Position numbers and translations under genes: made by a program | Notes under the pieces: generated by a model | Seen by the model: the letters and a program-made list of their open reading frames with translations, nothing else | Database searches by the model: none | What the model was told of the DNA's origin: nothing | Origin: Perkinsela sp. CCAP 1560/9 | Lineage: Eukaryota > Protista > Euglenozoa: Kinetoplastea | Length of the DNA stretch: 64,000 nucleotides | Reading direction: 5' to 3' | Assembly (NCBI GenBank): GCA_965644495.1 | Contig: CBFFSA010000020.1 | Coordinates: forward strand, 147,001 to 211,000 | In this document: positions 1 through 55,741 of the stretch, piece after piece | Numbering within the stretch: the first letter of the stretch is position 1 | How the letters are laid out: each line of letters starts with the position of its first letter

Positions 1-1374
1 GTCTGGGCGTACCTGGACGACGTCACCTTCGCTGGTGAACCTAGGGTATGCGCGGAAGCCCTAGAGGCCCTCCGCGAGGAGCTGAAACATCTTGGGCTGC
101 GGCTAGACACCGCCAAATGTAAAGTAGCCACAAGACACAAGGACCTCTTCTCCGAGTTCTCCGGATCTCGTATGGTTCACTCCCTCGGGGGGGTCAAGCT
201 ACTGGGGGCGTTCATCGGGGTGTCGGAGGCTAGGGAAGAAGAATGGGTGCTTTCCAAGGCCCCCAAGGTAATCTCCTTCTTGGGGAAACTTAAGGACATT
301 AGCAGGCAATGTGCCTTGCCCCTCTTAAGACTCTGTGGGAGTCCTCGATGGAATTACATCGTAAGGACCCACGAGCCCCCGGTCACTAAAGAGGCCAATA
401 CCCAGGTCGACAAAGCCGTCCTGGCATGTGCTGAGGCCTTGCTCGGGGGGATGGGCTCCTTGGGAAAAACGCCGTTTTCTAATAACCTCTTCACGGCAGA
501 TTTCCTGGGGACCATCCCCTTCGAGCACAAGGCCGAAGACATGCAGGCCAAGGCGAAGAACGCTCTACAGGGCCGACCCCAAGGCATGTCAGCCAAGGAG
601 CAGCGACGCAACCTCTGTGACGTCGCGTTGGGGAAAGCCCCGACGGCTACCCAACTGGTCTGCATGCGACAGACCCAGCGCTTTCACTCCACTAAGTGGA
701 GGAACGCATGGCCGAACAGGCCGGAGTATTACATGCGGGACCCACAGTGGGAGACTGCGGCCCGTCTCCGGTACTTGGTCGCCCCTACCTCGGAGCCTGA
801 GCTCCAGTGCGTGTGCGGTGCAACCCTCCGCAATGAGGATTTTTGCGTACACGCACTGGATTGCAAGAAGGTTAAGGGGAAGACCCAGGCCTCCCGCCAC
901 AAGGAGGTCAAGGAAACCTTCCGAAACCTTCTAGTCCAGTATGGGTTCAAACCGGACTTACACGAACCGAGGTTCGACAATGGACGGGGGCCGGACTTAT
1001 GCTTCCAGCTGGGACGGAAGACCGTCCTTGTGGATGTAACGGTCGTGAACCCACTGGCCCCGTCCTACGTGGAGAAGGAGGCCGCAGAGCCTTCTCACAC
1101 CCTGAGGATGGCCGAGGCCAACAAGCGGCGCTCCCACGATGAGATGGCGACCGCCCGAGGGATGGAATTTTACCCCTTGGCTTTCACCACGTACGGGATC
1201 CCGGGCCCAGAGACTTTGAACTTCCTAACCAAGGTGGCCCGGGCCCACACATCCGACAAGAACGGATGCATGTCTCACCTCCTGATGGCCATCGGGGTGG
1301 CCATCCAGAGAGGGAACGCCCAGATTGTACAGGCGGCGGTACAAGACTGGTACCGCCGCGGGGTACGAGGTTAG
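1..1374 (+). CDS. 3' part of CRE-clade non-LTR retrotransposon ORF (RT C-terminus, zinc knuckle, restriction-like endonuclease); 5' end lies outside the window
   Basis: Frame is open from base 1: VWAYLDDVTF (RT catalytic motif), KLLGAFIG, CVCG...HALDC, RH, GPD...VDVTV, FYPLAFTTYG, AIQRGNA. Followed by a 28-nt 3' UTR and A15 at 1403-1417. Confidence 0.9.
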   Translation, partial: VWAYLDDVTFAGEPRVCAEALEALREELKHLGLRLDTAKCKVATRHKDLFSEFSGSRMVHSLGGVKLLGAFIGVSEAREEEWVLSKAPKVISFLGKLKDISRQCALPLLRLCGSPRWNYIVRTHEPPVTKEANTQVDKAVLACAEALLGGMGSLGKTPFSNNLFTADFLGTIPFEHKAEDMQAKAKNALQGRPQGMSAKEQRRNLCDVALGKAPTATQLVCMRQTQRFHSTKWRNAWPNRPEYYMRDPQWETAARLRYLVAPTSEPELQCVCGATLRNEDFCVHALDCKKVKGKTQASRHKEVKETFRNLLVQYGFKPDLHEPRFDNGRGPDLCFQLGRKTVLVDVTVVNPLAPSYVEKEAAEPSHTLRMAEANKRRSHDEMATARGMEFYPLAFTTYGIPGPETLNFLTKVARAHTSDKNGCMSHLLMAIGVAIQRGNAQIVQAAVQDWYRRGVRG

Positions 1375-1666
1375 CTGGGCTAGGGGGTTTAGGGAGGGAA
1401 CCAAAAAAAAAAAAAAAGGGTTCACAAGCCAGGCCGAGGAGTGGTCGAAAGACCCGGTCCGGAACGCGCGAATGGTTAGGGAGTCACCCGCACGCCGGGT
1501 GAGGTGAAGCTGAGGGAGACCTTACCCTCCCTGAGAAGTTGAAAAGTGGGGTAGGGGAAAGTAGAGAAGTAGGGAGAAAAGTGGGAAAAGTAAGTCAAAG
1601 GGGGAGAAAGTGAGAGAGAAAGAGGGGAAAGTGGAAAATTTTCAAAAAAAAAAAAAAAAAAAAAAA

Positions 1667-1739
1667 GGGGGAGCATGGTCGGGACCTCCTCGTGGTCTTC
1701 CCCGGCACTGCCATCTTTCAGATGGTACTGACGCCGACC
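1667..1739 (+). ncRNA. HDV-like (nested double pseudoknot) self-cleaving ribozyme, copy 1
   Basis: P1 GGGGGAG/CTTCCCC; P2 GGTCGG/CCGACC; P3 ACC/GGT; L3 TCCTCGT; P1.1 CC/GG; P4 TGCCATC/GATGGTA; J4/2 CTGA (CNRA, catalytic C). G1 is the first base after the upstream A tract. Confidence 0.85.
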
Positions 1740-1872
1740 TTTAACCTAAAAGTGGGGTAGGGGAAAGTAGAGAAGTAGGGAGAAAAGTGGGAAAAGTAAG
1801 TCAAAGGGGGAGAAAGTGAGAGAGAAAGAGGGGAAAGTGGAAAATTTTCAAAAAAAAAAAAAAAAAAAAAAA
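1667..1872 (+). mobile_element. Ribozyme-headed non-autonomous retroposon (~180 nt plus polyA); second copy at 3267-3471
   Basis: Ribozyme followed by the ~100-nt purine-rich 3' tail shared with units 1418-1666, 1873-2082 and others, then an A tract. Confidence 0.8.
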
Positions 1873-2471
1873 CCCGGTCCGGAACGCGCGAATGGTTAGG
1901 GAGTCACCCGCACGCCGGGTGAGGTGAAGCTGAGGGAGACCTTACCCTCCCTGAGAAGTTGAAAAGTGGGGTAGGGGAAAGTAGAGAAGTAGGGAGAAAA
2001 GTGGGAAAAGTAAGTCAAAGGGGGAGAAAGTGAGAGAGAAAGAGGGGAAAGTGGAAAATTTTCAAAAAAAAAAAAAAAAAAACCTCCCCGTCGGCCAGCA
2101 TCCTGTTTCGCGACCGTGTCGCTGTTGACACAGGCCCGCGCCTGCGCCCTCCCATATAGCAAGGGAAGGGTTCACAAGTCAGGCCGTGGAGTGGTCGAAA
2201 GACCCGGTCCGGAACGCGCGAATGGATTGGGTCTGTATTGCTTGTTTTAGTTTTTACTGTTTCTTGTTTGTAGTATATACTTAGGGGAGATTAAATTGCT
2301 AGTTTTGGGCTGAGAAAAAACAAAAGGTACATCTGTGGAAACAAAAAGAATTGCTAATTTGATTGCTTGTTTTCAACTCGTATACCCCCCCCAATGGACC
2401 TACTTGGTTCGTCTACTGGGTCAAAATATAGAGGCAATGCCGCGATTCATACTTAAAAAAAAAAAAAAAAA

Positions 2472-3087
2472 GGGGGGGGGGGCACCCCCATCAAATACAC
2501 TCCTTTTTGTCGGCATCCCCCTTCCCCGTCTCGTCCCATCACCCCCCTGCGCCGCATCCCCCCACCTCACCCTCCCTCCGCAGAGCGCTTGCCCCCCTGT
2601 TGTGTTTCTCTCTCGCGTCCACCACCCCCGTGTCAGCAGCCAAAAGTATACAATACTTGCTCACGGGGTGGGGGCAGAGTTCCTGGCAGATGGTCCCGTG
2701 CTTCGCCTCCTCTCACCCCTGCGTCAGTCGCCCCGTGTCTCTCTCCGCGCTCTTCTCCCTCGGCGTGACGACGTCTTTGTGTTTCGTGGCCTCCACGTCT
2801 CCCACCCTCGTACGGCAACCAAAAGTATTTATTACTGCTAACGGGGTGGGAGCGGAGGTGCAGGACCATACGGGCCTCGGTGCATGCGGATCGGTGAGTG
2901 GGGTAGGGAGTGAGGGAAGGGAAGTACGAGAGGGCTAAGAGGAGTAGGTGTGGAAAGTATGGGGAGTAAGGGAAAGTGAAGGGCCGTAAGTGTGGAAATT
3001 GTGGAAAAGTTGGACTCCATACATAAAAAGTTAGACTCAATACTATTCCCCCCAATTATTTGCAAAAAAAAAAAAAAAAAAAAAAAA
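2472..3087 (+). mobile_element. Non-coding A-tailed retroposed unit of a distinct family
   Basis: Bounded by A tracts; C-rich 5' half with a duplicated hairpin motif; G-rich 3' tail; no credible ORF. Confidence 0.6.
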
Positions 3088-3266
3088 TATTCGCGGAACG
3101 CGCGAATGGATTGGGCATAAATTGCTTCTTTTTATTATTATTGTTATCAAAATCATAAATACTGTAACTTAAGGCAGGTTGAATTATTAGTTTTGGGCTA
3201 CAACATGTGAAATTGCTAATTTGATTGCTTGTTTACAAATCATATACAAAAAAAAAAAAAAAAAAA

Positions 3267-3339
3267 GGGGGAGCATGGTCGGGACCTCTTCGTGGTCTTC
3301 CCCGGCACTGCCATCTTTCAGATGGTACTGACGCCGACC
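3267..3339 (+). ncRNA. HDV-like ribozyme, copy 2
   Basis: Same as 1667-1739 except L3 is TCTTCGT, which turns one P1.1 C-G pair into U-G. Again starts directly after an A tract. Confidence 0.8.
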
Positions 3340-3664
3340 TTTAACCTAAAAGTGGGGTAGGGGAAAGTAGAGAAGTAGGGAGAAAAGTGGGAAAAGTAAG
3401 TCAAAGGGGGAGAAAGTGAGAGAGAAAGAGGGGAAAGTGGAAAATTTTCAAAAAAAAAAAAAAAAAAAAAACCCGGTCCGGAACGCGCGAATGGTTAGGG
3501 AGTCACCCGCACGCCGGGTGAGGTGAAGCTGAGGGAGACCTTACCCTCCCTGAGAAGTTGAAAAGTGGGGTAGGGGAAAGTAGAGAAGTAGGGAGAAAAG
3601 TGGGAAAAGTAAGTCAAAGGGGGAGAAAGTGAGAGAGAAAGAGGGGAAAGTGGAAAAAAAAAAA

Positions 3665-3694
3665 CGATAAAGATACAGTTTCTGTACCTTGTTG
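3665..3694 (+). other. Spliced-leader (mini-exon) remnant
   Basis: CGATAAAGATACAGTTTCTGTACCTTGTTG, resembling the kinetoplastid SL 3' end CAGTTTCTGTACTWTATTG. Recurs at five other element 5' ends. Confidence 0.85.
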
Positions 3695-3738
3695 AATTAT
3701 TTTTATTAACCCACTATTTTCCCTATCAGGGTCTCACC

Positions 3739-6700
3739 ATGCCACACGACGACCTCTTCGATGCGAATGCAGTACCCATGGACGACGACTCTTTCCGTCA
3801 GGAAGAAATTTCGCACAACACGGGTGCTTGGGACCAATTTGCAGGAAACGCACATTTAATTCCCGGTCAGAGCTCCTACGATGAACTCTTGTACACAACA
3901 CCGATTCCCAAACATATCCCCAAACACTGGGCAAAAAGAGCCGCCAAGATCGCCGGAGAGGCTCCCACGCCGGACACGGGAAGAATGACGGAAGATGAAG
4001 AGACGAATCACTCCCTCGTCGTGGAAGCAAGCCCGAGAAACACACCGGAGGTTCCTGACGCCCAAGTACCTTCTCCAAACAAGGCCTCGAAGCGCAAGAA
4101 CATAAATCCGGTACCGATCCCGCAGCACTGTACTCAGCGCGTATGCCCAGCTGAAGGATGCACTTGGAAGACTCCTCCTCACGGTGGGCAATGGCAAGCA
4201 TTTTACAATCATGTGGCCCACCGACACGGAGAAAGCGTACCAACCACTTGGTGGGAGGGGGAGGGAAGATTTCTTTGCAAGGACTGCGGCAGGCACTACG
4301 ATAAGAACAAGGAGAATTCTCACCCCAAACAGTGCAAAGGCCGTAACCACCCCGTGCGATCTCAAACCCCACCTAGGCCAACGACAAGTCTCGAAAATGC
4401 AACTGAAATTCCTCCAGAAAACATGCTATCAACGTTGAGCTCTATCTGCGCGCTGCCCATAAGCACATGCAAAGATGTCCCCCATTCCTGTAGGTTTCTA
4501 TGGGCGAGCATTTTGACACAGGTCATGACATCTGCTGTGCAAGAAAACACAATGGAGGCATGGACGTTACTGGCAATGCTCCCTAAATGCGTCTTACCTG
4601 CACCTTACCGAGGCGGTCGCAAAGGACACACGTCATACTCTACATACGTGGAAAAAAGCATGGAACTCTGGCTAGAAGGGGAGTACCTCTTGCTCTGGGA
4701 ACAGGCCCTAAAGGATCACGCCAAAAAACGCTCCAAGCCTAGAAGTTCCGAAAATGAAGAAGAAAGAGCGGCAATCAGGGCAGAAATACTGTCACGTCAA
4801 GGGGAATACTCTAGGGGAATAGCCGCTCTAACCGCAGCACCCATGGCGCCGGACAACGAGGAGACCCTTGCGAAGCTTCTATAAAAGCACCCAAATCCTC
4901 ACGAAAACCCACTTGAGAACGATCTTCCACCGATTGAGGGTAATCCCCTGCGTCTGGAGGAAGTTTTCGCAGAGGGTCTTCTGCCGGAACAATGGGTCTA
5001 CGTCCAGAACACATCCAGGCCGCCATTTTGGAACACGCCGACAAGAAGGTGGGTCCTCTTTCGTTCCTCACTCGCCTCGTGAACCACATGCTCCAAGGAA
5101 AGGCACCGCCAGAGGTACAACTGTTCTACGCTGGAGCCCGTCTCTGCGCTCTGGAGAAAGGTGAAGAAGATGTCCGACCCATAGCAGCAGGCGAAACCCT
5201 CAGACGTCTAGTAAGCAAAGCGGCATGCGTCGCCGTAAAGGAGAAGGCTGAAACTTTATTCCGGGGAAGACAGTATGGTGTGGCTGCATCCGCGGGGGCC
5301 GAACGAGTAATTCATCTGTGCCGGAAAACAATGCTAAACAACATGGGGAGCGACAGTCTTGTTCTCTGTAAGGTAGACCTCAGAAATGCGTTCAACAACG
5401 TCAGCAGGCCTGTCTTCACTTTGCTCACACGTCTCAATTTTCCAGAACTTTCACCCTGGGTGGAATGGTGCTACACAAACCCGAGTTGTCTTACCTACGG
5501 GAATCACTTCCTATCCTCAGCCGAAGGCGTCCAGCAAGGTGACCCATTGGGTCCGCTTCTCTTCTCTCTAGTCCTTTCTGGGGTAACCGAGGAAATATCA
5601 TCCCGATCAAACCTAGATTCGCAACTATGGTATTTGGACGACGGAGTTCTCATGGGGGAGGCGGCGGAGGTTCGAAAGGCGCTTGACGTTTTTTCCGAGG
5701 TTGGTTCACAATGCGGGCTATTTCTGAATCCGAACAAGTGTGAAATAATAACGCCACCTGCCTCAGCCCATCACACGACTTTATTTCCGGAAATACCTAC
5801 CGCCAAAATTCGTGTTGACGGGAATTTCGATATTCTCGGATCCCCGATTGGGTCTGCGGAGCACTGCGCGGAGTTCCTAATGTCTCACGCCATCGAACCC
5901 GCACGCGAGACTCTCGCAGCAATAGGGCTAATAGGCGATCCACAAGTTGCCATCGCCCTCATCCGCCAGTGCACTGGCTTCTGCCAAATGGTGTACACTC
6001 TCCGCACCACACCCCCCCAGGCTCTTTTTCAACTTTGTAGCCTACTAGACGAAACCGTTCTTAAAGCTGTCGAGTGGGCACTTTTCCCCCTGGAACCCCA
6101 CGCACGTGACCAAATCCAACGAAGGAAACGCCACGGAGGTTTCGGCCTTAGGTCTGCAACACTCCACGCGACAGCCGCTTACGTTTCTTCCGTCGCGCAC
6201 GCCGCCGACATAGACGACTGGGATCCTACAGAGGCTGATGGATTCGCCATTTCGGTACAAGACGTAAACCGTAAAGCAGGAGTAGCGCTAGTGGATCCCA
6301 ACACGGGGCGCACACCCAAGCAGGACAAGCCACTCCCATACTCAGGCCACCATCACAACTTCCTCCCGAAAAGGAAACGCCCACGGAGCACTCAAAACAA
6401 AATGGAAGCGGACAGGGCAACCGCGCCGGAGATGGTCATCCCTCGACAGCAGCAACTCAGCCAGGCTATCTCACAGCAGGAATTCACCACAGCACCGAGC
6501 AGGCTGACCCTCGCACTCGCGCACGGTGGGTTTCAGAGTCGGGTAAGGGAGCAGGTAGCTGGGCTTTCGTGACGCCCTCTAGGAGCAAAGGATACGCCTT
6601 CACACCAACAGAGTTCCGCACGCTGTCCCGCTGGTGGCTGGGATCCGACATCTATCAAGAAGATCGCCCTTGCCCAGCGAAGGGATGCACATTACCTCTG

Positions 6701-7291
6701 CAGAAAAATGGGGAACATGCATTGTTATGTAAGAACGGACATGGCCTCATCACCCGTCACAACGCGGTCTGTGAGCAATTCACAGCATTCTGCAGAAAAG
6801 CCGACATAGCTCCGCAAAGGGAGAAAAGCCTGGGAAATCGTGGTCCAAGAGGGGGTCTCACCAGACCTGCTGACGTGTTTCTCCCGAATTACACCCTGGG
6901 AAGTGGTATGGTGTTAGACTTCGCAGTCACCCACGCACAGCAACTAAAGTATTTGGACTCTGTCCGGAATGCTAGCTGGGTGGCTGCGGGATCTTTCGCT
7001 GAACACTACTCAGCAACGAAGGATAAACAACGCCAGGAAGCGGAGGAAGCGAAATTACTTTTTACGGCCATGGTAGTTGAATCCTTTGGCTCGTGGAGTA
7101 AAAGCGCGATGGCTGTTTTGTGGAAGGTGGGGGCGTTACGCGCAAACGCGTCAAACGGTCTACTCACAGACACTCAAGCCCGAAATGACCTTCTCAAAGA
7201 GCTGAACGTGGCTCTCATGCGCTCCCAGGCCCGGATGATGGTCTCTAGGATAGTCGTCAGTGACCCTGACGCTCCCCTGGAAGGGGCCTAA
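3739..7291 (+). pseudogene. CRE-type ORF (C2H2 zinc fingers, RT, CCHC, RLE) with disablements
   Basis: CPAEGC..HVAHRH; RPIAAGETLRRLVSK; DLRNAFN; GVQQGDPLGPLLF; WYLDDG; CPAKGC..HALLC, RHN, RPAD..LDFAV. In-frame TAA at 4882-4884 (LL*KHP) and frameshifts near 4960 and 6485. Confidence 0.9.
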
Positions 7292-8684
7292 GGGATCTCG
7301 GGAATACCCACTGGGACATAAACCGCTGGTCCGGATGCTGGTCGGTGCCGACAGGGTCTATGCTCACGCCTAGTCCGTCAGGGCTAGGTACCCCAAGTGA
7401 GGTAGGACAAGGGTAGGGAACTTTGTTCCTCCCCGTCGGCCAGCATCATGCTCCGCGACCGTGCCGCTGTCGGCACAGGCCCATTGCTTGCGCCCTCTCG
7501 TACAACAAGAGAAGGGTTAACAAGGCAAGCTGGGAGTGGTCGAAAGACCCGGTTCGGAACATGCATGAGGAAGATGGGAGCGCGAATGGATTGGAGAAGA
7601 CCTCGCCTCCCCCCTTTTTTATCATCAAAAACCCTCTTGTGGCGTAGGTGCGAGGCGAGGCAGAGGGAGACCTTACCCTCCCTGGAAAGGTGGAAGTTCG
7701 GTAAGGGGAAGTGGGAAAGTTGGGAAGTGGGAAAGTTGGGAAGTGGGAAGGTTGGGAAGTGGGAAAGTTGGTTCGCTAGTTTTTATATAGTTGTTAAAAA
7801 GAGGAAAAAGATTTAAATAAAGAAAAATATAATCTTTAAAAAAATTGCTAATTTGATTGCTTGTTTTCAAATCACTACCCCCCCCCCCCCCCAATGGACC
7901 TACTTGGTTCGTGTACTGGGTAAAAATATAGAGGCAATGCCGCGTTTCAAAAATTATAATACAAAAATAAAACAGGCCCGCGCCTGCGCCCTCCCGTATA
8001 ACAAGGGAAGGGTTCACAAGCCAGGCCGAGGAGTGGTCGAAAGACCCGGTCCGGAACGCGCGAATGGTTAGGGAGTCACCCGCACGCCGGGTGAGGTGAA
8101 GCTGAGGGAGACCTTACCCTCCCTGAGAAGTTGAAAAGTGGGGTAGGGGAAAGTAGAGAAGTAGGGAGAAAAGTGGGAAAAGTAAGTCAAAGGGGGAGAA
8201 AGTGAGAGAGAAAGAGGGGAAAGTGGAAAAAAAAAAAAAAAAAAAAAAAAACAGGCCCGCGCCTGCGCCCTCCCGTATAACAAGGGAAGGGTTCACAAGC
8301 CAGGCCGAGGAGTGGTCGAAAGACCCGGTCCGGAACGCGCGAATGGTTAGGGAGTCACCCGCACGCCGGGTGAGGTGAAGCTGAGGGAGACCTTACCCTC
8401 CCTGAGAAGTTGAAAAGTGGGGTAGGGGAAAGTAGAGAAGTAGGGAGAAAAGTGGGAAAAGTAAGTCAAAGGGGGAGAAAGTGAGAGAGAAAGAGGGGAA
8501 AGTGGAAAATTTTCAACTCAATAAAATACATCCCACCTTTATGCCTTACAGATCAATGTTAATGGAGCCCATGCAAGTGGGGCTTGCACTGGCTGGCACA
8601 GATTGGCACTGGCTGGCATATAATTTATTTTATTTTATCACCCCATGCTGAGTCACAGGCCGCAAAAAACACACGTTCCGCCAG

Positions 8685-10407: not shown

Positions 10408-13400
10408 ATGGCCCCACCACTTCTATTCTTTAACGCGAGCCAAGTGACTCTATCCTCACCGTTGCCACACGAAACTGTTGCCGTACTGCCCTTCCCCGAT
10501 GATACTTCACCTACCCCATCCACCGCATTAATATTGAATGCATCTAACCATCTTGCTGAGCAGCCGCGGAAGGTTCGGATGGATCTTACCATACAACAAA
10601 AAAACAACCTATGTGCTAGTATAGATGCCGGCAAGTCTGTAAGCGTCGCCGCCCGAGATTACAAGGTCGAGGTAAGCACGGTACATAGAGTTTATCGGAA
10701 AAAAGAAGATTGGCATAAATTTACTCAACTTGGCTTTGGGAAATTGTTTCAGTACCACCCCCCTCGAGCAAATCCAGGCATAAAGGGGCGAGGGAGATAC
10801 GAAGCAACAGATGTAGCAGATTCCCATTGAAAAGAAATCGTATCTCCGTGCACGAGAAATGCCTACCTATGCGCTCGCCTGCTTGGAGTCAACTTCGTGC
10901 AGGGAGATACGAATTCCTTTCAGTGGGAATCTGCTACATCTGTTGCTTCGTATCTGCCTCGCCCCTTTATGCCTGGATTCTACAAAAACAGTTTCGTCGC
11001 ATCAATCAGTAAAATTCATGGGCGTCATGGAAGTAAGAATTGACAAAAAATGTCAATCTTCTTCTCAAAAGTGGCTACTGAAGGCTTCTGAAAAAGTGTC
11101 CAGCTGACCACCCCCAGAAAAAGTGTTCAGCTGGCCACCCCCTGAAAAAGTGTCCAGCTGACCACCCCGTGGAAAAATGGCCAGCTGGCTACCCCCTGGA
11201 AATCTGGCCAACTGGCCACCCCCTGAAAAGTTGACCAGCTGGCCACCCCCTGGAAAAGTGGCCAGCTGACCACCCCCTGGAAAAGTGGCCAGCTGGCCAC
11301 CCCTTTAAAAAGTGGCCAGCTGGCCACCTCCTGGAAAAGTGGCCAGCTGACTACCCCCTGGTAACGTGGCCAGCTGACCACCCCCTGGTAACGTGGCCAG
11401 CTGGCCACCCCCTGGAAAAGTGGCCAGCTGGCCACCCCTTTAAAAAGTGGCCAGCTGGCCACCCCCTGGAAAAGTGGCCAACTGGCCACCCCCGTGAAAA
11501 GGTGGCCACCCCCTGGAAAAGTGGCCAGCTGACCACCCCCTGGAAAAGTGGCCAGCTGACCACCCCCTGGTAACGTGGCCAGCTGGCCACCACCTGGAAA
11601 AGTGGCCAGCTGACCACCCCTTTAAAAAGTGGCCAGCTGGCCACCCCCTGGAAAAGTGGCCAAATGGCCACCCCCTGAAAAGTGACCAACTGGCCACCCC
11701 CTGAAAAGGTGGCCAGCTGGCCACCCCTTGAAAAAGTGGCCAGCTAACCACCCGCTTAAAAAATGGCCAGCTGACCATCCCCTGGAAAAGTGGCCAGCTG
11801 ACCACACCCTGGAAAAGTGGCCAACTGGCCACCCACTGGAAAAGTGGCCAGCTGGCCACCACCTGGAAAAGTGGCCAGCTGACCACACCCTGGAAAAGTG
11901 GCCAACTGGCCACCCACTGGAAAAGTGGCCAGCTGGCCACCACCTGGAAAAGTGGCCAGCTGACCACCCCTGGAAAAAGTGGCCAGCTGACCACCCCCTT
12001 AAAAAGTGGCCAGATGACCACCCCTTTAAAAAGTGGCCAGCTAGCCACCCCCTGGAAAAGTGGCCACCTGGCCACGCCCTGAAAAGGTGGTCAGCTGGCC
12101 GCCCCCTTAAAAAGTGGCTAGCTGGCCGCCCCCTGAAAAAGTGGCCAGCTGAGCACCCCCTGAAAAAGTGGCTAGCTGGCCGCTCACTGAAAAAGTGGCC
12201 AGCTGGCCACCTCCTGGAAAAGCGGCCAGCTGGCCATCCCCTGGAAAAGTGGCCAGCTGACCACCCCCTGGAAAAGTGGCCAGCTGACCACCCCCTGGAA
12301 AAGTGGCCAGCTGGCCACCCCCTGAAAAAGTGACCAGCTGCTCTTTCATGCAGGAGGTGGCCAGCTTGCGACTTTTTTTGGACGTCGCCATTCATCTTGA
12401 GTATATGAAATGCAAACTGTGTTTTTTGGTAGCCAGCTGGCCATTTTTCAAGGAGGTGGCCAGCTGACCATTGTCTCAGGGGGTGGCGAGCTGGCCACTT
12501 TTTGAAGGGCGAGAAAATCATACCTTTTTTTCGTTCATTTGTTATGCCGTCGGCGAGTGAAACGCGTTTCAAAAAGTGGTTCTGGAAGTTAGTTTAGGAG
12601 CTGAAAAATATTCCCCAAACGTTCAAACAGCTGTAGTCTGTTTGTGTGGGGAACATAATCAAGCATCTTCGCGTTTTTTCTGATTTGAAATATCCGTCTC
12701 TGAGCTGAATTCCGAGTCGCATTTTTGGTAAAAGGGCTCTAAAAACTGTTGAGTGTACTCGTTTTTTTTCATTTTTGGAGCATTACAGAGATTGATTGAA
12801 GAAAAATGTCTCTGTTTTTAAAAATTTGAAAAAATCGTTTTTATGCTCGTTTTATGCCCATTTTGGGCTCGCGGAATTAACCTTAGTAAGCGAGTTAGAT
12901 ACTCACCGTATCTCCCTCAATAAAAAATTATATGAAAAAGGGTTGCCGCAACTGCTTTTGCTACGCGAGTCTCTTTCGGCAGTCACGAAACCGACAATGT
13001 TGGGGTACTTTGCTGAAATTTCAGAGCACTTCTGTTCCCTTACCGACAAAGGAAAAGAAAAATTTTGGATTCGTATTTGCACCTTCGCCAATATTTCGCG
13101 ACGGAGTCAACGGAGCAACCCAAATGGTCCCAAAAGACATGGACGAGCGTATAGAAGCCTTTTTGAATATGATAGCTCTGCGAAATTGTGATCGCGTGGA
13201 TACGCTGTAATCGTAACAGGGGACGAGACCTGTGTTGTGTGGGAGCCCGTCAATGAAATCACATACGACACTAAAGGGACAAAGCGCGTAAAGGTTTTAA
13301 CTACAGGGAAGGAGAAGAAGACACTGGCTGCGTGGTTTTGGGGCCTCTCTGTTACGAACCAACGGCATGCAGAAAGCACGTGGGAGCATAAGGTGTTTCC

Positions 13401-14307
13401 TCCGCACTTAATTTGGGAAGCCCATTCAGATTCTGGAAAGGTTTCCAAAGAGGTGCTCCGGGCGGCAGAAAAGTACAATTGTACGGCAACAACGACAACA
13501 AGCGGGTGGAACACAGGAGAGTCATTTAAAAAATGGGCTGAAGCGGAATTCTTTGACAGAATGAAGTATCCTCCGCGGAAAACACTTATTATTTTGGATC
13601 TGTACGCTGCTCATCGGACAGCGGAATTATTATTGTTCTTTCGTGAGAGAGAAATCGATGTTCAATTCGTTCCAGGAGGTTGCACTTCCAAAGGACAGCT
13701 CATGGATATGGCCATCAACCAGCCTTTTAAAAAGTACTACAAGGAATGTTTTGCCTCCTGGCGTGCGTCGACGCATCATGAAATTGTCCGGCCGACGCGA
13801 AGTCTTATAACAAAATTTGCGACTCAGGCTCTGGCAAAAGTGAATTCAGAAGAATACGAAATCGAATTTAATAAGTTGCTTGTTCCAGCACTTTCCAAAA
13901 ATCTCGCACAGATTCCCATAGAATCCAGAGCCGAGCTCAGACTCTCCTCAAGCGTTATCACGGAGTCAATGGTGGATGCATCAGCCATCGCTTCACGCGT
14001 ATCACAACTGAGCATTGTCGAGGAATCTCTTGAACCAAATCAGGTCCCTCGCCTGCCACCGCGCGTTCCTGTAAAAAATCGAATTAGTCCCGCAATCGCA
14101 GCGAAAGCCATGAAGTCCGCCATAGAGTCAGCGCGTAACAGGAACTCAGCGCTTAACGCAACCCCAGTACAGGAGTGTTGTTATTGCACGCGAGCGAATT
14201 TAACTCTACGGGAGTGTAGTGAACCTGGGTGTTTAACGAAATTTCATCACATGTGTGCAATTGAAGAAAAGGGGGAAGAGAATGACAATTTCTGCGCAAA
14301 GCACTAA
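10408..14307 (+). pseudogene. pogo transposase (CENP-B-like HTH, DD35D, C-terminal PHD-like finger) split by a ~2.1-kb insertion
   Basis: LTIQQKNNLC..AARDYKVEVSTV HTH; GDET, ILDLYAAH, VPGGCTSKGQLMD; CCYC..CSEPGC..FHHMC..C. Confidence 0.8.
11066..12500. repeat. 27-bp minisatellite, roughly 45-50 copies, with degenerate edges
   Basis: Unit CCCCCTGGAAAAGTGGCCAGCTGGCCA containing the 14-bp palindrome TGGCCAGCTGGCCA. Confidence 0.95.
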
Positions 14308-17300
14308 CGATGGCCGCAGGTCAGGGCCACTGCATATATTTTCGGCAGTGTTGGGGCTTAGCGCACCTCACCTTCCCCAGCTTTTTACCTCCACAGCACC
14401 GTTTTTAATATTCGTCGTATCTAGGTTTTTCTGTGGTTTTACTTAGTGTCTTGCAAAGACGGGCGATAAGGGTTTTACTGGAGGAACTTGACAACTTAAT
14501 ATTCCCCCCCTTACTTCACCACCCCCCTTACTTCACCACAAAGTATGGGTTTTGGGCCAAAAAGTGGAGGCTAAGTAAGGGGGGGGGTAACGGTATTCGG
14601 GAGCGGAGGGCTTGTAGCACATTCGGGTCACGAGAGCTTTGCATATGGCAAAGAGCTTCCCCGGTGCAAAGGTGCCATAATTGCGATATGTTTGTAAGAT
14701 TCCATCCGCGTGAGGTATATAAGGTTTCACTACTGGTGGCAGAGGCAAAGTTCATCCACTTCTTGATATGGCGGGTAGCTCTTTTTTGTAGGCGGAGTAT
14801 CAATGAATGAGTAAGGCTGGCATGAACAACGAATTGAAAACGCAACTTTGATAGGACGGCGTGTTGGTAGATCCATAGTTTGGATGAGAGGCTGTGTGCA
14901 TTGGCGCTGATTTTTTCGAGCCACGTTATCAGATTTTCGTCCGTTTATTTGAAGAGGATTTTCGACTGCTGGGCCCCTGGAGCAAGAGTCATTCCTAGAA
15001 AGCTGCTACCTTTGTCACATATATGGGGGATGCTGCTCCCGTGAATCAAAATCTTCGGTCTTCGAGTCATATAACCGGGATGGTTTGTGCCCTTCTCCAT
15101 AGACATACACTGTATTGATGTTTGTTACGTCTGCGTCGAAGAAGGAGATCACTCAAGGCTTGGGTGTGCTCAAGAGTCCCGTTAAGCTCCGGAAGAAACC
15201 CTTTCTGTATTGTAGGGTCAATGACACCAGCTTCCAGAAGATGAGTTATAAGTCGGTGCCCGATGATGCTGTGGAACAGTTTTCCGACAGCACTTGTAAG
15301 GGATATTGGTCGCCAATTTTTCGGATTTCCAGTGTCACCTTTCTTGTACGTATGAGTTTCGTTACAGCTGTCTTCCAAGTTTGAGGACAGATTTCATGAC
15401 GTAAGAGATCATTGTACGTTTGCGCCAGTGTTGAGTAGAGGGAAGGGCACCTTTTTAGAATTGCATTTGTGACAGTGTCGCTCCCCGGAGCGCTGCTAGA
15501 TCTTTTCCCTTTCAGAGCTTGGGCGATGTCGTCGCTAGTAATGTCTGCCCATTTCATTTCCACAAGTGCTCGGGGTCCGAGGAAACTGTACTCTGGAAGT
15601 TTGAATTCAGTTTCGGGCGCTGTCAGTACTTTATCAAAATGATCTTGGACATCGGCCAGCTGACACGTCGGGAATTGAGGCGAGGCTTGTGCATCTCGTA
15701 GTTCAGGTCGGCTTAATGTTTCCGCTGCCGCTGTCTATGGATTCCGTGTGAAACTTTCAAGGGCCCACCTTTCTTCCATCTCTTTTCGTTGTAACCGTGA
15801 TTCCTCCTTGTAAATCCTGATCAGTCTACTGCTCTCTTTAATTTGGATCTTTACTTTTTCACGATTAGATTTTCCGTGCGTATAGCGGAGAGATATTTTT
15901 TGGTGTCGAACATCTTTTTCAAGTTCCAGGATATTTCTTTCAAGCGCAAGGGGTCGGCAACGATTTTGAGCATGACCATTGCGAGTGCGTAAGAGAAATC
16001 CTCGTGTTGGGTTGATCTCAGTGGCCAGGTCGTATGCTGATACAGCAAGAGCTGCACATAAGACTTGTGCGTTCTCGAGGGCTTCTGATGGACTCGTAGC
16101 AGGACGCAGTAACTCCGCGCATTTTGCGTATGCATTTTTCTGGACTGTTTCCCATTGGTCATCGCTTAGTTTAACCATTACTTTACCCCCTTCTATTGAA
16201 CGGTGTGTTCGAAACAGCTGCTCCACAGCAATCTGGCGGTTTGAACTTTGTGGAGTGGCATTCTTGTCACCATGAGGGGTTGAAATTGTAGTCGGAGGTA
16301 CGTCTTCGGTTTCTTGAGTCGGAAGGGAAGGAGGTCTAGTGATTTTGCAACATGGGTGTTTGTACTTCATTTTGTCTTTACACTTGTGGTGACATGGGCT
16401 AGATTTAGTTGTCGTAGCTATCTTCCCAGTTTCTGTTTGTCTAATGTTGTGTGGAGATTCTTTCTGGATTACCGTCTGTTGATAGTCCGGGGTATCGATA
16501 GCGTCTTCTTCTTTTTTCAGTGTAATGGAAAGGTGGCGGAGCGCTGGGATGTCTTGCCCACCAAGCCGCTTCCGGATAGCTTTTCCCAGCGAACCCGGTG
16601 ATTTGTATTTGGCGGAGAGCTGCAACACAGGGTCGTTTAGGAGAGTGAACCAGCTTGTATGCCGATGAACGATATCCGGAGTCCCTGTTCTATGTATTTC
16701 GATGTAGTCGCATGCGTTGTTCGATATCAGCTCTGTTATCGTAGCGGCTTCGGCCACAAGGTCGTGAGCTTGAGACTGTTTGGCTAATAGTTTCGTAATT
16801 GCGGCTTCGGCGCCCTGCAGGGATCCTATTCGTTTTCTAACAAGTGCAGATTTGCAGGCTGATTTTACATCGGGAAAGTAATGCCAACAGGATTCGGTAA
16901 TAGCCCGGATTTTAAGGGGGCGTGTCCTGCTTTGAATAAAATGCAGGAGGTCCTGCAGCGCATGCTTATGAGTTTTCTGTGGGTGGCTCGGAGTCATAAA
17001 GGAGAAAACATATAATATAAGAAATCAACAAGGTACAGAAACTGAGGGAGTTGGTCCATCCTTGTTCAGTATACTGGCCAAGGATAGCAACTCCCCATTA
17101 TCTCGGCGTAGCAAACACGCCTTGGCTTGCCTGGCACTGAGATCAGCCAATGGAAAAAAACGCTTTTTTTCGTTAGAGGCCTCCTTTCTCAGCCCAGGGG
17201 CTTCCCACTTAAGGGGCCCGTTCCCATAACCAAGTGATCTCCCCGGCAACACGATTTCATTCGTGCGTCAAGAAGGCTGGGCTATGGGACCAGGGAGCTC

Positions 17301-17966
17301 TAGAACAAGTGCAGCAACTTGTGAGCCTAATTCGTTGGACATGAAATGATAGTGTGATTAAATTAGTTCATAGTAAAATTATTTATAAAAAATAATTACA
17401 TATTCGCTTATTCTGAAAATTGGTAATGCAAACGTTTGAACGGCGGCCATTCTCATGTATTGGTCGCTTTGCTCTTGCATAACTTCCGCATGCCACCTTT
17501 TCTTCATCACCCTTTTCATAGGAATAAATTGTTGTTCGGAGAATGGTTTTTTGGAGAATGTTTTACTGTTACTATTTTGTCAGGGCGCGGAATAACATCT
17601 AAACTGATATTTATACTGATATTTTCTGGGATTTTGTCTCATGTTTTGTCTCATACTTCTCAAGACCATTAGAGCTACACTTTTTCCCCATACTTAAATT
17701 TAGCTTGTATTATTGCAACGCGCGATATTTTGTGCTTACCCATACAGTAATAGTCAACACAATAAGCTTAAAATATGATAATGACTAGTACGGTGATAAT
17801 TTTCTGTATCTCTATTTTAAGAAATTTTATTTATCCGTGCATTTAAAAACAATTCAATGCTGACACACGCGACCCCTTCCCTCACGGCCTTCATCTTAGC
17901 TTCAATCCACCCGAAAAGGGTAGATTGAACCGGTAACCATTCTGTCCAAAGTTCTGCAGGTGTTAA

Positions 17967-19050
17967 TGAGTATCGACGACTACGATAACTGTTTCATTTA
18001 TCAGCGCCTTGATGCGTTGAATGATGATGTCTACTGCATCTTGTGGGCTATACGCTTTTGCAACAGCACGTCCGACAGCGGTATTATCTGTTAAAATAAA
18101 AGCGACGGATGGATTGTGTGCCATCAACTGATTTTTCACAACCCTTTTTCGAAGGCTATAGCCTCGTCCATAGCAATCGGCAGTTCCTCCCCTTGCAAAC
18201 TTTGATATTCAACACCTCTTTCATTTCTAAATACTCCTCTTCGTATGGCAGTAATCTCATCACTCAGAGTGTAAGTAGCCCAACGGGTAGGTGTGGGATC
18301 GACTGTTATGCTCAAAATAGAATCTTTTTATGTGGTATAGATGCGATTTTGCATGGGACCACAAAGGCTTTAATGACAATATCAAATGTTTCATAGAATC
18401 GACAGGACTCTTGATTTCGTCCAATTCCGCGTCCCAGTTGACCATTTTGCCAAGAGAACTCTGAGCTTTCGATGCTCTCCCGAGTCCTATACGGTCCGCT
18501 GCCACTACTGATCCCGCGAAGCGGTAAAAACCTAGGAGGCTAAAGTACGTACGAGGAGTGTATTTCATTGTTGTCCGCACTATTTGATGCCATGGTGGTA
18601 AGGGAGTTCAGCACACGCATATCTAATATCGCCCGAGCCTTTGATTCAGTTTTCAGCACGGCCAAATACTTAGATAGAACAGGTATTGTGCCAGTGGGGT
18701 TGCTTTGAAGTCCTCAAGAGCGCCACACGACGTGAGGTACGCCAAGTGCCGAAACCAACGTTTTCCGAATGTATTAGTTGTGTTCCGATGTATTAGTTGT
18801 GATGGGCAGTGGTTCCTTATTCTGAAGAGGGTCCCTATTCAGAAGGCTAGTCGCGTGCACTGTATAAGGTGTATTGGCTATGGATGTGCCAAGCTCAAAT
18901 CTGCCACCTCCTACGGTTTTTAACTCCGCAAGAGGTATATCGTTGTCCGCTATTCTCCCGCGAACGCCGGCCGTTTCTTTGCTAGAGAACGAAACATGAT
19001 GCAAGACAATACCTGGACCCGAACTACGCGTACTATCTAATTGTGCAAAG
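17967..19050 (-). pseudogene. Decayed DIRS/VIPER-like RT-RNase H remnant (repeated in each unit)
   Basis: Minus-strand fragments VLKTESKARAILDMRVLN (RT), YPLGYLHS, and ILTDNTAVGRAVAKAYS (RNase H). Confidence 0.55.
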
Positions 19051-19092
19051 TCTCTCTTTTTGATTATTGAGCTCTCACGACACGAATTTTAT

Positions 19093-19257
19093 ACCCCCCC
19101 GGAAATTGGTGACCCCCCTGTATAGTTACTATAAACTTTTTTTAAAAACTTTAAAAAGGTTCGGCGAAAGATTTTCGCCAAGTTGATATTTTAGTTAATT
19201 GTTTTTCCGGAAAAAAATCCGATCTTGGTGGACCCTTCCTGTAGATACCGGGGGGTT
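19093..19257. mobile_element. Small MITE-like element (repeated in each unit)
   Basis: Short inverted ends ACCCCCCCGG / CCGGGGGGTT; internal palindromes TATAGTTACTATA and GGCGAAAGATTTTCGCC. Confidence 0.4.
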
Positions 19258-19381
19258 ATTTGTTCACCTTTTCAGTAAGCGGTCGTAGTAAGTAGGTGCC
19301 TCCACAGTCATCCCAGTGTGAAACACAACCTGTAATTGTACTTATTTACACTACTTCAAGGTTAGGTAAACATTGATTATT

Positions 19382-20107
19382 ATGATGTTTTGCTCACTGC
19401 TTTCGGCTGATGTAACGGAACCGTTAAGAAAGGAAGCCCGAAAAGAAACGAACTCTTCTGACACGACGCTTTCCACAAGTAGTTCTAATGTGACTGGAAA
19501 ATCTCGTCCATCCAAAGTCAGTGCCGTATCGTTACCCGTGGAGTACGATTTGATGAGACTCGTAGAAAACCCTCCACGCTCATGGTCCACCGATACTCCG
19601 GGATGTAGATGGGATGGGGTCAGATGTAACGACAAGGGCGACGTGATTTGGATGAACTGGAGTGGCAGGATGGGCGAGGACAGTAGCAAGAAACTGCAAG
19701 GTCAGTTCAATGTAAAATATTTGCCGTACGAACTGAAACATTTACGCCTAACGGGAAATTCTCTGTCGGGTGAGTTTCCGTTCGATCAGTTGCCTCCGAA
19801 ATTGGAAGACATTGACATATCGAGGAACCAGTTCACGGGTACTCCAGATTTTCGTCATTTGCCACCCTTTCTAGTCTATCTTAATATGTCCGACAATAGA
19901 TTTCATGGTCATATTGAATTTGATTTCGTGCACGAAAACTTGCGTCAAATGAGCTTAGCTTTTAATGCAGAACTTGAAGGCTTCCTAAAAATCAGAGACG
20001 AGATAAAGAATCTGTATTATACTGTAGCACGAACAAAGATTACAGTAAGCAATGGTGTGATGGTCCTAAATCGACCGATCGGGAGCGTTTGTGGAATATG
20101 TGGATGA
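19382..20107 (+). CDS. Leucine-rich repeat protein, array copy 1
   Basis: N-cap CRWDGVRC and LPxxLxxLxLxxNxLSG repeats; first ATG at 19382. Confidence 0.88.
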   Translation: MMFCSLLSADVTEPLRKEARKETNSSDTTLSTSSSNVTGKSRPSKVSAVSLPVEYDLMRLVENPPRSWSTDTPGCRWDGVRCNDKGDVIWMNWSGRMGEDSSKKLQGQFNVKYLPYELKHLRLTGNSLSGEFPFDQLPPKLEDIDISRNQFTGTPDFRHLPPFLVYLNMSDNRFHGHIEFDFVHENLRQMSLAFNAELEGFLKIRDEIKNLYYTVARTKITVSNGVMVLNRPIGSVCGICG

Positions 20108-22303
20108 AGGTACGTTGATATCTACAGTGGGGAATAGGCACGGAAAACGTCAGCATACAAAAAATACTTCAACGGTTGCAAAGATATAATACATTGTGTT
20201 AGATGGGCCTATTTGAACAATAAATAGCGTTATAATAGGCGCAATAATGCTTCACTTTGACCATAAAATAATAATATAGTGTTAGTTTGAATATTATCTT
20301 GTTATTTATAAAAAATAATTACATATTCGCTTATTCTGAAAATTGGTAATGTAAACGTTTGAACGGCGGCCATTCTCATGTATTGGTCGCTTTGCTCTTG
20401 CATAACTTCCGCATGCCACCTTTTCTTCATCACGCTTTTCAGAGGAATAAATTATTGTTCGGAGAATATTTTTTTCGGAGAATGGTTTACTGTTACTATT
20501 TTGTCAGGGCGCGGAATAACATCTAAACTGATATTTATACGGATATTTTCTTGGATTTTTCCATGTTTTGTCTCATACTTCTCAAGACCATTAGAGCTAC
20601 ACTTTTTCCCCATACTTAAATTTAGCTTGTATTATTGCAACGCGCGATATTTTGTGCTTACCCATACAGTAATAGTCAACACAATAAGCTTAAAATATGA
20701 TAATGACTAGTACAGTGATTATTTTCTGTATCTTTATTTTAAGAAATTTTATTTATCCGTGCATTTAAAAACAATTCAATGCTGACACACGCGACCCCTT
20801 CCCTCACGGCCTTCATCTTAGCTTCAATCCACCCGAAAAGGGTAGATTGAACCGGTAACCATTCTGTCCAAAGTTCTGCAGGTGTCAATGAGTATCGACG
20901 ACTACGATAACTGTTTCATTTATCAGCGCCTTGATGCGTTGAATGATGATGTCTACTGCATCTTGTGGGCTATACGCTTTTGCAACAGCACGTCCGACAG
21001 CGGTATTATCTGTTAAAATAAAAGCGACGGATGGATTGTGTGCCATCAACTGATTTTTCACAACCCTTTTTCGAAGGCTATAGCCTCGTCCATAGCAATC
21101 GGAAGTTCCTCCCCTTGCAAACTTTGATATTCAACACCTCTTTCATTTCTAAATACTCCTCTTCGTAAGGCAGTAATCTCATCACTCAGAGTGTAAGTAG
21201 CCCAACGGGTAGGTGTGGGATCGACTGTTATGCTCAAAATAGAATCTTTTTATGTGGTATAGATGCGATTTTGCATGGGACCACAAAGGCTTTAATGACA
21301 ATATCAAATGTTTCATAGAATCGACAGGACTCTTGATTTCGTCCAATTCCGCGTCCCAGTTGACCATTTTGCCAAGAGAACTCTGAGCTTTCGATGCTCT
21401 CCCGAGTCCTATACGGTCCGCTGCCACTACTGATCCCGCGAAGCGGTAAAAACCTAGGAGGCTAAAGTACGTACGAGGAGTGTATTTCATTGTTGTCCGC
21501 ACTATTTGATGCCATGGTGGTAAGGGAGTTCAGCACACGCATATCTAATATCGCCCGAGCCTTTGATTCAGTTTTCAGCACGGCCAAATACTTAGATAGA
21601 ACAGGTATTGTGCCAGTGGGGTTGCTTTGAAGTCCTCAAGAGCGCCACACGACGTGAGGTACGCCAAGTGCCGAAACCAACGTTTTCCGAATGTATTAGT
21701 TGTGTTCCGATGTATTAGTTGTGATGGGCAGTGGTTCCTTATTCTGAAGAGGGTCCCTATTCAGAAGGCTAGTCGCGTGCACTGTATAAGGTGTATTGGC
21801 TATGGATGTGCCAAGCTCAAATCTGCCACCTCCTACGGTTTTTAACTCCGCAAGAGGTATATCGTTGTCCGCTATTCTCCCGCGAACGCCGGCCGTTTCT
21901 TTGCTAGAGAACGAAACATGATGCAAGACAATACCTGGACCCGAACTACGCGTACTATCTAATTGTGCAAAGTCTCTCTTTTTGATTATTGAGCTCTCAC
22001 GACACGAATTTTATACCCCCCCGGAAATTGGTGACCCCCCTGTATAGTTACTATAAACTTTTTTTAAAAACTTTAAAAAGGTTCGGCGAAAGATTTTCGC
22101 CAAGTTGATATTTTAGTTAATTGTTTTTCCGGAAAAAAATCCGATCTTGGTGGACCCTTCCTGTAGATACCGGGGGGTTATTTGTTCACCTTTTCAGTAA
22201 GCGGTCGTAGTAAGTAGGTGCCTCCACAGTCATCCCAGTGTGAAACACAACCTGTAATTGTACTTATTTACACTACTTCAAGGTTAGGTAAACATTGATT
22301 ATT

Positions 22304-23029
22304 ATGATGTTTTGCTCACTGCTTTCGGCTGATGTAACGGAACCGTTAAGAAAGGAAGCCCGAAAAGAAACGAACTCTTCTGACACGACGCTTTCCACAA
22401 GTAGTTCTAATGTGACTGGAAAATCTCGTCCATCCAAAGTCAGTGCCGTATCGTTACCCGTGGAGTACGATTTGATGAGACTCGTAGAAAACCCTCCACG
22501 CTCATGGTCCACCGATACTCCGGGATGTAGATGGGATGGGGTCAGATGTAACGACAAGGGCGACGTGATTTGGATGAACTGGAGTGGCAGGATGGGCGAG
22601 GACAGTAGCAAGAAACTGCAAGGTCAGTTCAATGTAAAATATTTGCCGTACGAACTGAAACATTTACGCCTAACGGGAAATTCTCTGTCGGGTGAGTTTC
22701 CGTTCGATCAGTTGCCTCCGAAATTGGAAGACATTGACATATCGAGGAACCAGTTCACGGGTACTCCAGATTTTCGTCATTTGCCACCCTTTCTAGTCTA
22801 TCTTAATATGTCCGACAATAGATTTCATGGTCATATTGAATTTGATTTCGTGCACGAAAACTTGCGTCAAATGAGCTTAGCTTTTAATGCAGAACTTGAA
22901 GGCTTCCTAAAAATCAGAGACGAGATAAAGAATCTGTATTATACTGTAGCACGAACAAAGATTACAGTAAGCAATGGTGTGATGGTCCTAAATCGACCGA
23001 TCGGGAGCGTTTGTGGAATATGTGGATGA
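22304..23029 (+). CDS. Leucine-rich repeat protein, array copy 2
   Basis: Same translation as copy 1. Confidence 0.88.
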   Translation: MMFCSLLSADVTEPLRKEARKETNSSDTTLSTSSSNVTGKSRPSKVSAVSLPVEYDLMRLVENPPRSWSTDTPGCRWDGVRCNDKGDVIWMNWSGRMGEDSSKKLQGQFNVKYLPYELKHLRLTGNSLSGEFPFDQLPPKLEDIDISRNQFTGTPDFRHLPPFLVYLNMSDNRFHGHIEFDFVHENLRQMSLAFNAELEGFLKIRDEIKNLYYTVARTKITVSNGVMVLNRPIGSVCGICG

Positions 23030-25225: not shown

Positions 25226-25951
25226 ATGATGTTTTGCTCACTGCTTTCGGCTGATGTAACGGAACCGTTAAGAAAGGAAGCCCGAAAAGAAACGAACTCT
25301 TCTGACACGACGCTTTCCACAAGTAGTTCTAATGTGACTGGAAAATCTCGTCCATCCAAAGTCAGTGCCGTATCGTTACCCGTGGAGTACGATTTGATGA
25401 GACTCGTAGAAAACCCTCCACGCTCATGGTCCACCGATACTCCGGGATGTAGATGGGATGGGGTCAGATGTAACGACAAGGGCGACGTGATTTGGATGAA
25501 CTGGAGTGGCAGGATGGGCGAGGACAGTAGCAAGAAACTGCAAGGTCAGTTCAATGTAAAATATTTGCCGTACGAACTGAAACATTTACGCCTAACGGGA
25601 AATTCTCTGTCGGGTGAGTTTCCGTTCGATCAGTTGCCTCCGAAATTGGAAGACATTGACATATCGAGGAACCAGTTCACGGGTACTCCAGATTTTCGTC
25701 ATTTGCCACCCTTTCTAGTCTATCTTAATATGTCCGACAATAGATTTCATGGTCATATTGAATTTGATTTCGTGCACGAAAACTTGCGTCAAATGAGCTT
25801 AGCTTTTAATGCAGAACTTGAAGGCTTCCTAAAAATCAGAGACGAGATAAAGAATCTGTATTATACTGTAGCACGAACAAAGATTACAGTAAGCAATGGT
25901 GTGATGGTCCTAAATCGACCGATCGGGAGCGTTTGTGGAATATGTGGATGA
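25226..25951 (+). CDS. Leucine-rich repeat protein, array copy 3
   Basis: Same translation as copy 1. Confidence 0.88.
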   Translation: MMFCSLLSADVTEPLRKEARKETNSSDTTLSTSSSNVTGKSRPSKVSAVSLPVEYDLMRLVENPPRSWSTDTPGCRWDGVRCNDKGDVIWMNWSGRMGEDSSKKLQGQFNVKYLPYELKHLRLTGNSLSGEFPFDQLPPKLEDIDISRNQFTGTPDFRHLPPFLVYLNMSDNRFHGHIEFDFVHENLRQMSLAFNAELEGFLKIRDEIKNLYYTVARTKITVSNGVMVLNRPIGSVCGICG

Positions 25952-54026: not shown

Positions 54027-54066
54027 CAGGAAAAGAGATTGATTTATACTGTGCCCCCCCCACTTA

Positions 54067-55604: not shown

Positions 55605-55741
55605 TATAGTGCCGCGGGGTACCCCCCCCCACTTATAGTGCCGTTTAGAAGAAAACAAATTGTCCGCAAAAAAATTGATCAATTCTTTTTTTTACAAAAA
55701 AGGTAGAGTAAATGTAGCGTAAATTTCTAATATTTTCTTTT

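Follow-up and report, generated by a model that had tools for sequence, protein, structure and literature searches.

A probable retro-chimera headed by an HDV-like ribozyme of DNA transposons in a LINE stack of Perkinsela

Introduction

In the literature considered here, the self-cleaving ribozymes described in mobile elements are those of retroelements (PMC6765202, PMC3414825, PMC5814959). In the R2/R1 SIDEs of Drosophila, an HDV-like ribozyme together with 5-8 downstream bases is fused to the 3' sequence of another LINE (Eickbush and Eickbush 2012, PMC3414825). Template jumps by an RLE-type reverse transcriptase (RT) have been described alongside these SIDEs, and the known template-jump chimeras join R2 to U12 snRNA or tRNA, and L1 to U6 (PMC3414825). 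The trypanosomatid elements NARTc, RIME, and SIDER, as well as the L1Tc/ingi elements with their Pr77 ribozyme, are freed from polycistronic RNA by ribozyme cleavage (PMC5814959). Six LINE clades have been listed with ribozymes, and the CRE clade is not among them (PMC5786205). CRE elements are defined by an RT, a C-terminal restriction-like endonuclease, and a poly(A) tail, and trypanosomatids are without DNA transposons (PMC12278014).

We analyzed a stretch of 64,000 nucleotides of the kinetoplastid Perkinsela sp. CCAP 1560/9 (GCA_965644495.1, contig CBFFSA010000020.1; "the window"), in which an HDV-like ribozyme heads a short element in a stack of LINEs. Like the R2/R1 SIDEs, this element joins a ribozyme at its head to the tail of a foreign LINE, carries no promoter, and is interspersed in a tandem LINE array. 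However, the SIDE ribozyme comes from a LINE (R2), whereas that of the window appears to come from a DNA transposon. SIDEs keep conserved R1 3' segments, whereas the tail in the window is an internal UTR piece, and SIDEs have a 14-bp target duplication and demonstrated cleavage, whereas the window has one junction in two copies and cleavage is predicted. With NARTc, RIME, and SIDER, the element shares the design of a short non-coding kinetoplastid retroelement with an HDV-like ribozyme head. In contrast, these trypanosomatid elements arose by deletion from a single APE-type LINE, and Pr77 additionally acts as a promoter; the partner LINE in the window, unlike L1Tc/ingi, belongs to the RLE type, lacks a ribozyme, and carries a spliced leader at its start. 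As in template-jump chimeras, an RNA with a defined 5' end would have been fused upstream of LINE sequence and multiplied from a single jump, but the captured RNA would here be a ribozyme cleavage product able to regenerate its own 5' end. With the HDV/CPEB3-type ribozymes (RF00094; PMC6765202), the fold shares the nested double pseudoknot, the HDV-like L3, the C-N-R-A motif in J4/2, and, for the majority of genomic copies, G1-U37; unlike these, it stays below the RF00094 cut-off, and its family sits in cut-and-paste DNA transposons.

Results

The two ribozyme copies lie on the plus strand at 1667..1739 and 3267..3339, and in both, the helices P1, P1.1, P2, P3, and P4 are all present in nested double-pseudoknot order within 73 nt. 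In copy 1, P1 is formed by 1667-1673/1697-1703 (7 bp, G1-C37), P2 by 1677-1682/1734-1739 (6 bp), P3 by 1684-1686/1694-1696 (3 bp), P1.1 by 1688-1689/1704-1705 (2 bp), and P4 by 1709-1716/1720-1727 (8 bp). L3 spans 1687-1693, J4/2 begins with the predicted catalytic C1728, and the predicted cut is 5' of G1667. An HDV descriptor matched only these two sites in the 64-kb window, and shuffled-window controls gave 0 matches with strict and 0.1 with relaxed settings. The HDV-like fold is confirmed at both sites. As the Rfam scores are below the gathering threshold (17 bits to RF00094 versus a cut-off of 50 bits), the ribozyme call is based on descriptor matches and covariation. Nested folding was unremarkable (z about -1), in line with a pseudoknot. 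In equilibrium folding, with pseudoknots left out, the probability of P1 was at most 0.01 once the whole G-rich tail was included; since the tail outcompetes P1 at equilibrium, any cleavage would have to be co-transcriptional.

A first-pass annotation, made from the sequence alone, had claimed that the HDV-fold elements are complete in 73 nt, that both units start exactly at the cleavage-site G1, and that L3 reads TCCTCGT. The first two claims are borne out, with G1 directly 3' of an A-tract in each case. The loop sequence applies to copy 1, whereas copy 2 has TCTTCGT; this difference (C1689 versus T3289) gives a G-U pair in P1.1 of copy 2. Both copies and the C/T difference are also found in another assembly (ENA ERZ24900291; 10.2 kb compared, 0 mismatches), which probably stems from the same sample and is thus not independent of GCA_965644495.1; an assembly artefact is nevertheless unlikely, as the locus is identical there. 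Searches of JGI metagenomes and IMG/VR with the ribozyme core gave no match.

We searched the genome (21 Mb in 110 contigs, with repeat counts being lower bounds) for further copies and found a family with at least 40 BLAST matches and 70 matches to the core pattern (0 in the control). The covariance-model search that had been proposed with the first-pass annotation gave 117 matches, a lower bound whose weak end is uncertain. We read 28 of the other copies, none of which had poly(A) flanks or the 102-nt tail that follows the window ribozymes. They fall into about seven element families, and each is either located within a DNA transposon bounded by TIRs or has ends in common with one. TIRs at both ends together with a target duplication were found at 12 loci; the remaining copies have ends in common with these loci or show a single terminus. 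The duplication is TA in the pogo/Tc1-type families, at L005, L007, L008, L011, L012, L024, L026, L027, and L028, whereas it is 8 bp at L017 and L018 (hAT-type) and 9 bp at L004 (Mutator-type), with the hAT and Mutator labels being taken from duplication length and ends. The ribozyme 3' end is about 70-290 nt before one end of the host transposon, and between most of the transposon families, similarity extends from about G1 to the end of P2. Loss of pairing in copies extending 5' of G1 had been named as evidence against the proposed ribozyme-headed SINE; the DNA-transposon copies do extend 5' of G1 and keep the pairing.

Among the ribozyme hosts, a transposase was found in the pogo family only, the other hosts being non-coding. 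L020 contains a DDE_1 transposase upstream of the ribozyme on the same strand, and in L006, a broken transposase ORF stops about 350 nt 5' of G1, again on the same strand. A sense ribozyme lies within 1.2 kb downstream of 6 of the 59 DDE_1 matches, versus about 0.2 expected and 0 at the mirror position; this comparison was made by coordinates, and three of the six are in the training set, the others being C3:106161, C1:12470, and C1:2473696. In total, the genome has at least 59 DDE_1 and at least 150 DDE_3 matches. No Mutator transposase was found beside a ribozyme. The possibility that the ribozyme marks a Fanzor/TnpB guide RNA was rejected, as there was no PF07282 match over the cut-off and none beside a ribozyme, with a model that can miss Fanzor1.

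The window itself contains a pogo element with a C-terminal PHD-like finger (13237-14595). This relative of the ribozyme-bearing family encodes a protein with 55-66% identity to it (ORF 13237-14307) and has no ribozyme. The ribozyme is thus not obligatory for the pogo lineage and behaves as a patchy passenger.

Several side aspects of the family copies may be mentioned. A stretch resembling the spliced-leader (SL) exon, with 19-22 of 26 matches, lies upstream of the ribozyme in one transposon family (the pogo elements L006 and L024, about 67 nt 5' of G1) and downstream in another (L014, L015, and L027-L029, about 94 nt 3' of G1). In the hAT-type family, the intact ribozyme of L016-L018 is followed, about 85-130 nt 3' of G1, by an incomplete repeat of itself and of the flank upstream of it. 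Pairs of model matches about 110-130 nt apart were found on contig C9 and are duplicated 55 kb away (221252-221441/276388-276577 and 218880-219065/274016-274201). On contig C2 (619581-638252), twelve weak model matches of 38-42 bits, known from their coordinates, are spaced by 1692 bp, probably as tandem repeats that each contain an HDV-like fold.

Across 21 distinct copies, 95% of the pair cells are kept, versus 27-48% in slid controls, and the changes concentrate in loops and in P4. Both-side changes were found at four pairs, including C-G to U-A in P1.1; 4 of 500 shuffles reach this score, the copies are related, and P1-P3 hardly vary. In the C-N-R-A motif of J4/2, C62 and A65 are invariant and position 64 is always a purine, and in the L3 core, U21, U24, C25, and G26 are invariant. 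Most genomic copies have G1-U37, whereas the window copies have G1-C37. The window ribozymes differ from L003/L004 at 3-5 nt, versus 8-11 nt for the other 26 copies, and have C37, the P4 loop, and three T after P2 in common with L003/L004. In addition, T3289 in L3 of window copy 2 is the L003/L004 allele. U(-1) and all donor sequence upstream of G1 are missing from the window copies. By these similarities, the Mutator-type L003/L004 appear to be the nearest donor among the 28 other copies read; a closer donor may be found among the remaining of the 117 model matches.

The ribozyme copies are embedded in a head-to-tail stack of RLE-type LINEs and truncated 3' UTR pieces, with A-tracts between them, that occupies 1-8514 of the window; all stack features described here are on the plus strand. 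At the head of the stack is the 3' part of another RLE LINE ORF (172..1374). An SL exon in its spliced form (3665..3694) heads the next LINE and is followed by a degenerate CRE-like coding region with RT and restriction-like endonuclease (3739..7291), which is split into three broken ORFs and is a relative of the tail donor. A location of the stack at a chromosome end was rejected, as the window starts 147 kb into contig C20 and is internal.

The partner LINE has an RVT_1 domain match with R2 proteins as the best solved relatives, a zinc knuckle and a PD..D motif were read in its ORFs, and its copies have a poly(A) tail. This architecture corresponds to that of the CRE clade and suggests the label CRE-like; homologue searches yielded no named CRE proteins. 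The LINE copies are headed by the SL exon in its spliced form, without the donor GTA, usually right after an A-tract, and SL-RNA-gene-specific insertion as in trypanosomatid CREs was not seen. The position of the SL exon at the head of copies behind A-tracts indicates that the RT is able to read an RNA template through to the 5' end and that A-tracts are its insertion sites. The 5' end of the partner LINE thus derives from trans-splicing and not from a ribozyme. An origin of the ribozyme in the LINE's own 5' end was rejected, since the copies are SL-headed and the covariance model finds no ribozyme there.

SL-headed RLE LINEs belong to at least two distant families (window 3665-3694 and 35122-35153; L041, L047, L051, L052, and L059). 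The SL exon is nearly complete in several copies, and some have short 5' duplications. These LINEs are probably retro-copies of trans-spliced RNA that inserted at poly(A) and not in SL genes. Genome-wide, the SL exon together with its donor site is scattered over 131 places and not confined to an array (for example in L004 near 2564 and L016 near 788). An HSP10 encoded at one of the loci read is most similar to proteins of PhF-6, PhM-4, and Perkinsela, indicating a prokinetoplastid.

Copy 1 directly follows the A23 tract of the preceding unit (1644..1666), its insertion site. The ribozyme is joined through an 8-nt linker (1740..1747), the first three T of which match L003/L004, to a purine-rich 102-nt piece of the CRE-like LINE 3' UTR (1748..1849) and an A23 tract (1850..1872). 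A 5'-truncated LINE 3' UTR unit with A19 (1873..2082) then forms the second half of a duplicated block. Copy 2 follows the A19 tract of a different preceding unit (3248..3266), which is its insertion site; its junction and tail are as in copy 1 and end in A22 (3340..3471), and the same truncated UTR unit comes next (3472..3664), which carries A11 and ends 9 nt earlier at another poly(A) site that is also used at 8227. The identity of the two copies therefore spans about 390 nt, through the next unit, and not 206 nt: the blocks 1667-2058 and 3267-3657 differ by one substitution and one A, and the UTR piece in both has its 5' end at the same base. The A-tracts on both sides of the chimera would hide any target duplication. 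The truncated unit at 1873..2082 contains UTR hairpins, whereas the 184-nt ribozyme-tail unit is without them. A hammerhead in this neighboring UTR unit was considered by eye and rejected, as no such core was found.

In its exact form, the 102-nt tail is present in 7 copies, all in the window stack, and sequences elsewhere are 80-91% alike. At 23 other loci that we read, the tail was preceded by LINE UTR in 21 and by a short truncated UTR piece in 2, and never by a ribozyme. It is an internal UTR segment, beyond which the LINE copies end at about ten different poly(A) sites. When LINE families are compared, the UTR upstream of the tail is 80-94% identical per 50 nt, whereas from the tail onward identity falls from 84% to 50-66%.

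The 184-nt unit is short, non-coding, and poly(A)-ended and has a defined 5' head, and it had been annotated as a SINE-like parasite of about 180 nt that cuts itself out of read-through transcripts and uses a CRE RT, such CRE-dependent elements not being known. The composition given, a ribozyme followed by a tail of about 100 nt and polyA, was correct except for the intervening 8-nt linker. A dispersed SINE family, however, is not supported. Even with 3 mismatches allowed, the ribozyme-tail junction is found only twice in the genome, 1.6 kb apart, and among the family copies, only these two have poly(A) before G1. Across the whole genome, there were no independent insertions of the ribozyme-tail unit; the two copies lie in one stack and share the downstream unit, and the tail is not a fixed LINE terminus. 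As both copies have junction, block, and next unit in common, they descend from one joining event, and what we observe is one chimera that was copied once. The RT used is most likely that of the local RLE LINE, the CRE-like label of which derives from architecture. Regarding novelty, it holds that CRE is absent from the listed ribozyme clades, but the combination of a ribozyme head with a foreign LINE tail was already known from R2/R1 SIDEs (PMC3414825). A CRE-like partner for a ribozyme-headed element would be new, but independent insertions of this one were not found.

We give a probability of roughly 60% to the reading that the window element is a retro-chimera made once and copied once. 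Read-through RNA of a Mutator-type copy would have cleaved itself and yielded a 3' RNA starting at G1. The CRE-like RT would have joined this product to 102 nt of its own 3' UTR, either in a template jump or through a truncated insertion directly 3' of the ribozyme and subsequent release. It would then have run off at G1, the 5' end of the RNA, and the cDNA would have entered an A-tract of the LINE stack. Finally, read-through RNA of the stack would have been cut again at G1, polyadenylated at the end of the next unit, and retrotransposed as a unit of about 390-410 nt. Cleavage in vivo is best indicated by the lack of the donor U(-1), the exact start at G1 counting as one event and not as two. 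As an indirect cleavage footprint, the chimera suggests that DNA-transposon ribozymes cut in the cell. In its design, it would be a ribozyme-headed non-autonomous retroelement and not a family.

A second RNA passage of the whole block fits the finding that the two blocks end at distinct poly(A) sites, 2063 in one and 3653 in the other, each of which other units also use. Alternatively, there may have been one retro-capture at G1, with the second copy arising by duplication at the DNA level, through recombination or slippage between A-tracts and without a second RNA step. The short distance between the copies, the homology supplied by the flanking A-tracts, the confinement of the exact tail variant to the stack, and the presence of other identical pairs there (7972/8251) would all agree with such a duplication. 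We nevertheless consider it rather unlikely, as it does not readily account for block ends at two poly(A) sites that each carry a separate A-tract, and as the copies are separated by three unrelated units and not arranged in tandem.

Clearly less probable is a true minimal SINE, consisting of ribozyme, 102-nt tail, and poly(A), of recent origin or incompletely represented in the assembly. In principle, it has every part required, the LINE RT accepts many 3' ends, the genome repeat counts are lower bounds, and R2/R1 SIDEs can number <5 copies within tandem arrays (PMC3414825). However, the unit is always accompanied by the same downstream unit, no dispersed copy exists among the matches, and the better-conserved part of the UTR, upstream of the tail, is missing from the 184-nt unit. 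It is very improbable that the start at G1 is accidental, with 5' truncation or DNA repair having joined a fragment of a transposon to an A-tract and the ribozyme being inactive here, because an exact landing on the cleavage base is unlikely by chance and the family keeps its pair cells, compensatory changes, and invariant catalytic C, even though truncation points vary widely among the stack units, with several at runs of G or C, and the downstream G-rich sequence competes for P1.

Discussion

Together with the retro-chimera reading of the window element, the distribution of the ribozyme leads us to a tentative proposal, to which we give slightly less than even odds: several DNA-transposon superfamilies may have recruited one active HDV-like ribozyme for 3' processing behind the transposase gene, as a cut in read-through RNA of a host without terminators, and the chimera would be an in vivo record of the cut and the seed of a ribozyme-headed retro-parasite assembled from both class II and class I elements. 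Kinetoplastids couple polyadenylation of an RNA to the trans-splicing of the gene that follows, so that a randomly landed element has no reliable 3' end. A ribozyme cut would end the transposon RNA and leave the downstream host RNA free for splicing. We therefore favor 3' processing of the transposase transcript as the role that the ribozyme may have. A rival role would be self-attenuation, by analogy with the SIDER elements in Leishmania 3' UTRs, for which self-attenuation has been proposed (PMC5814959).

In a literature search, for which most subscription journals were outside coverage, we found no HDV-like ribozyme inside DNA transposons. The present family is of interest because one ribozyme lineage is common to unrelated DNA-transposon superfamilies, in consistent position and strand. 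From this follows a hypothesis, open to testing, on how DNA transposons could form the 3' ends of their mRNAs, or keep their own expression low, under polycistronic transcription. The chimera would in addition show how a SINE-like element is born by combining class II with class I sequences. Its importance as a SINE is minor, with two copies and a design that R2/R1 SIDEs and NARTc already have; its main value is that of a pointer to the DNA-transposon ribozymes.

Other repeats of the window were noted in passing. A Tc1-like element at 54065-55606 has 108-bp inverted repeats and an open transposase ORF on the minus strand (54287-55408). A 2922-bp LRR gene unit is present in six tandem copies with 99% identity at 17345-32540, and the region 10771-12510 contains an 85-bp fold-back and a 27-bp minisatellite with an inverted block.
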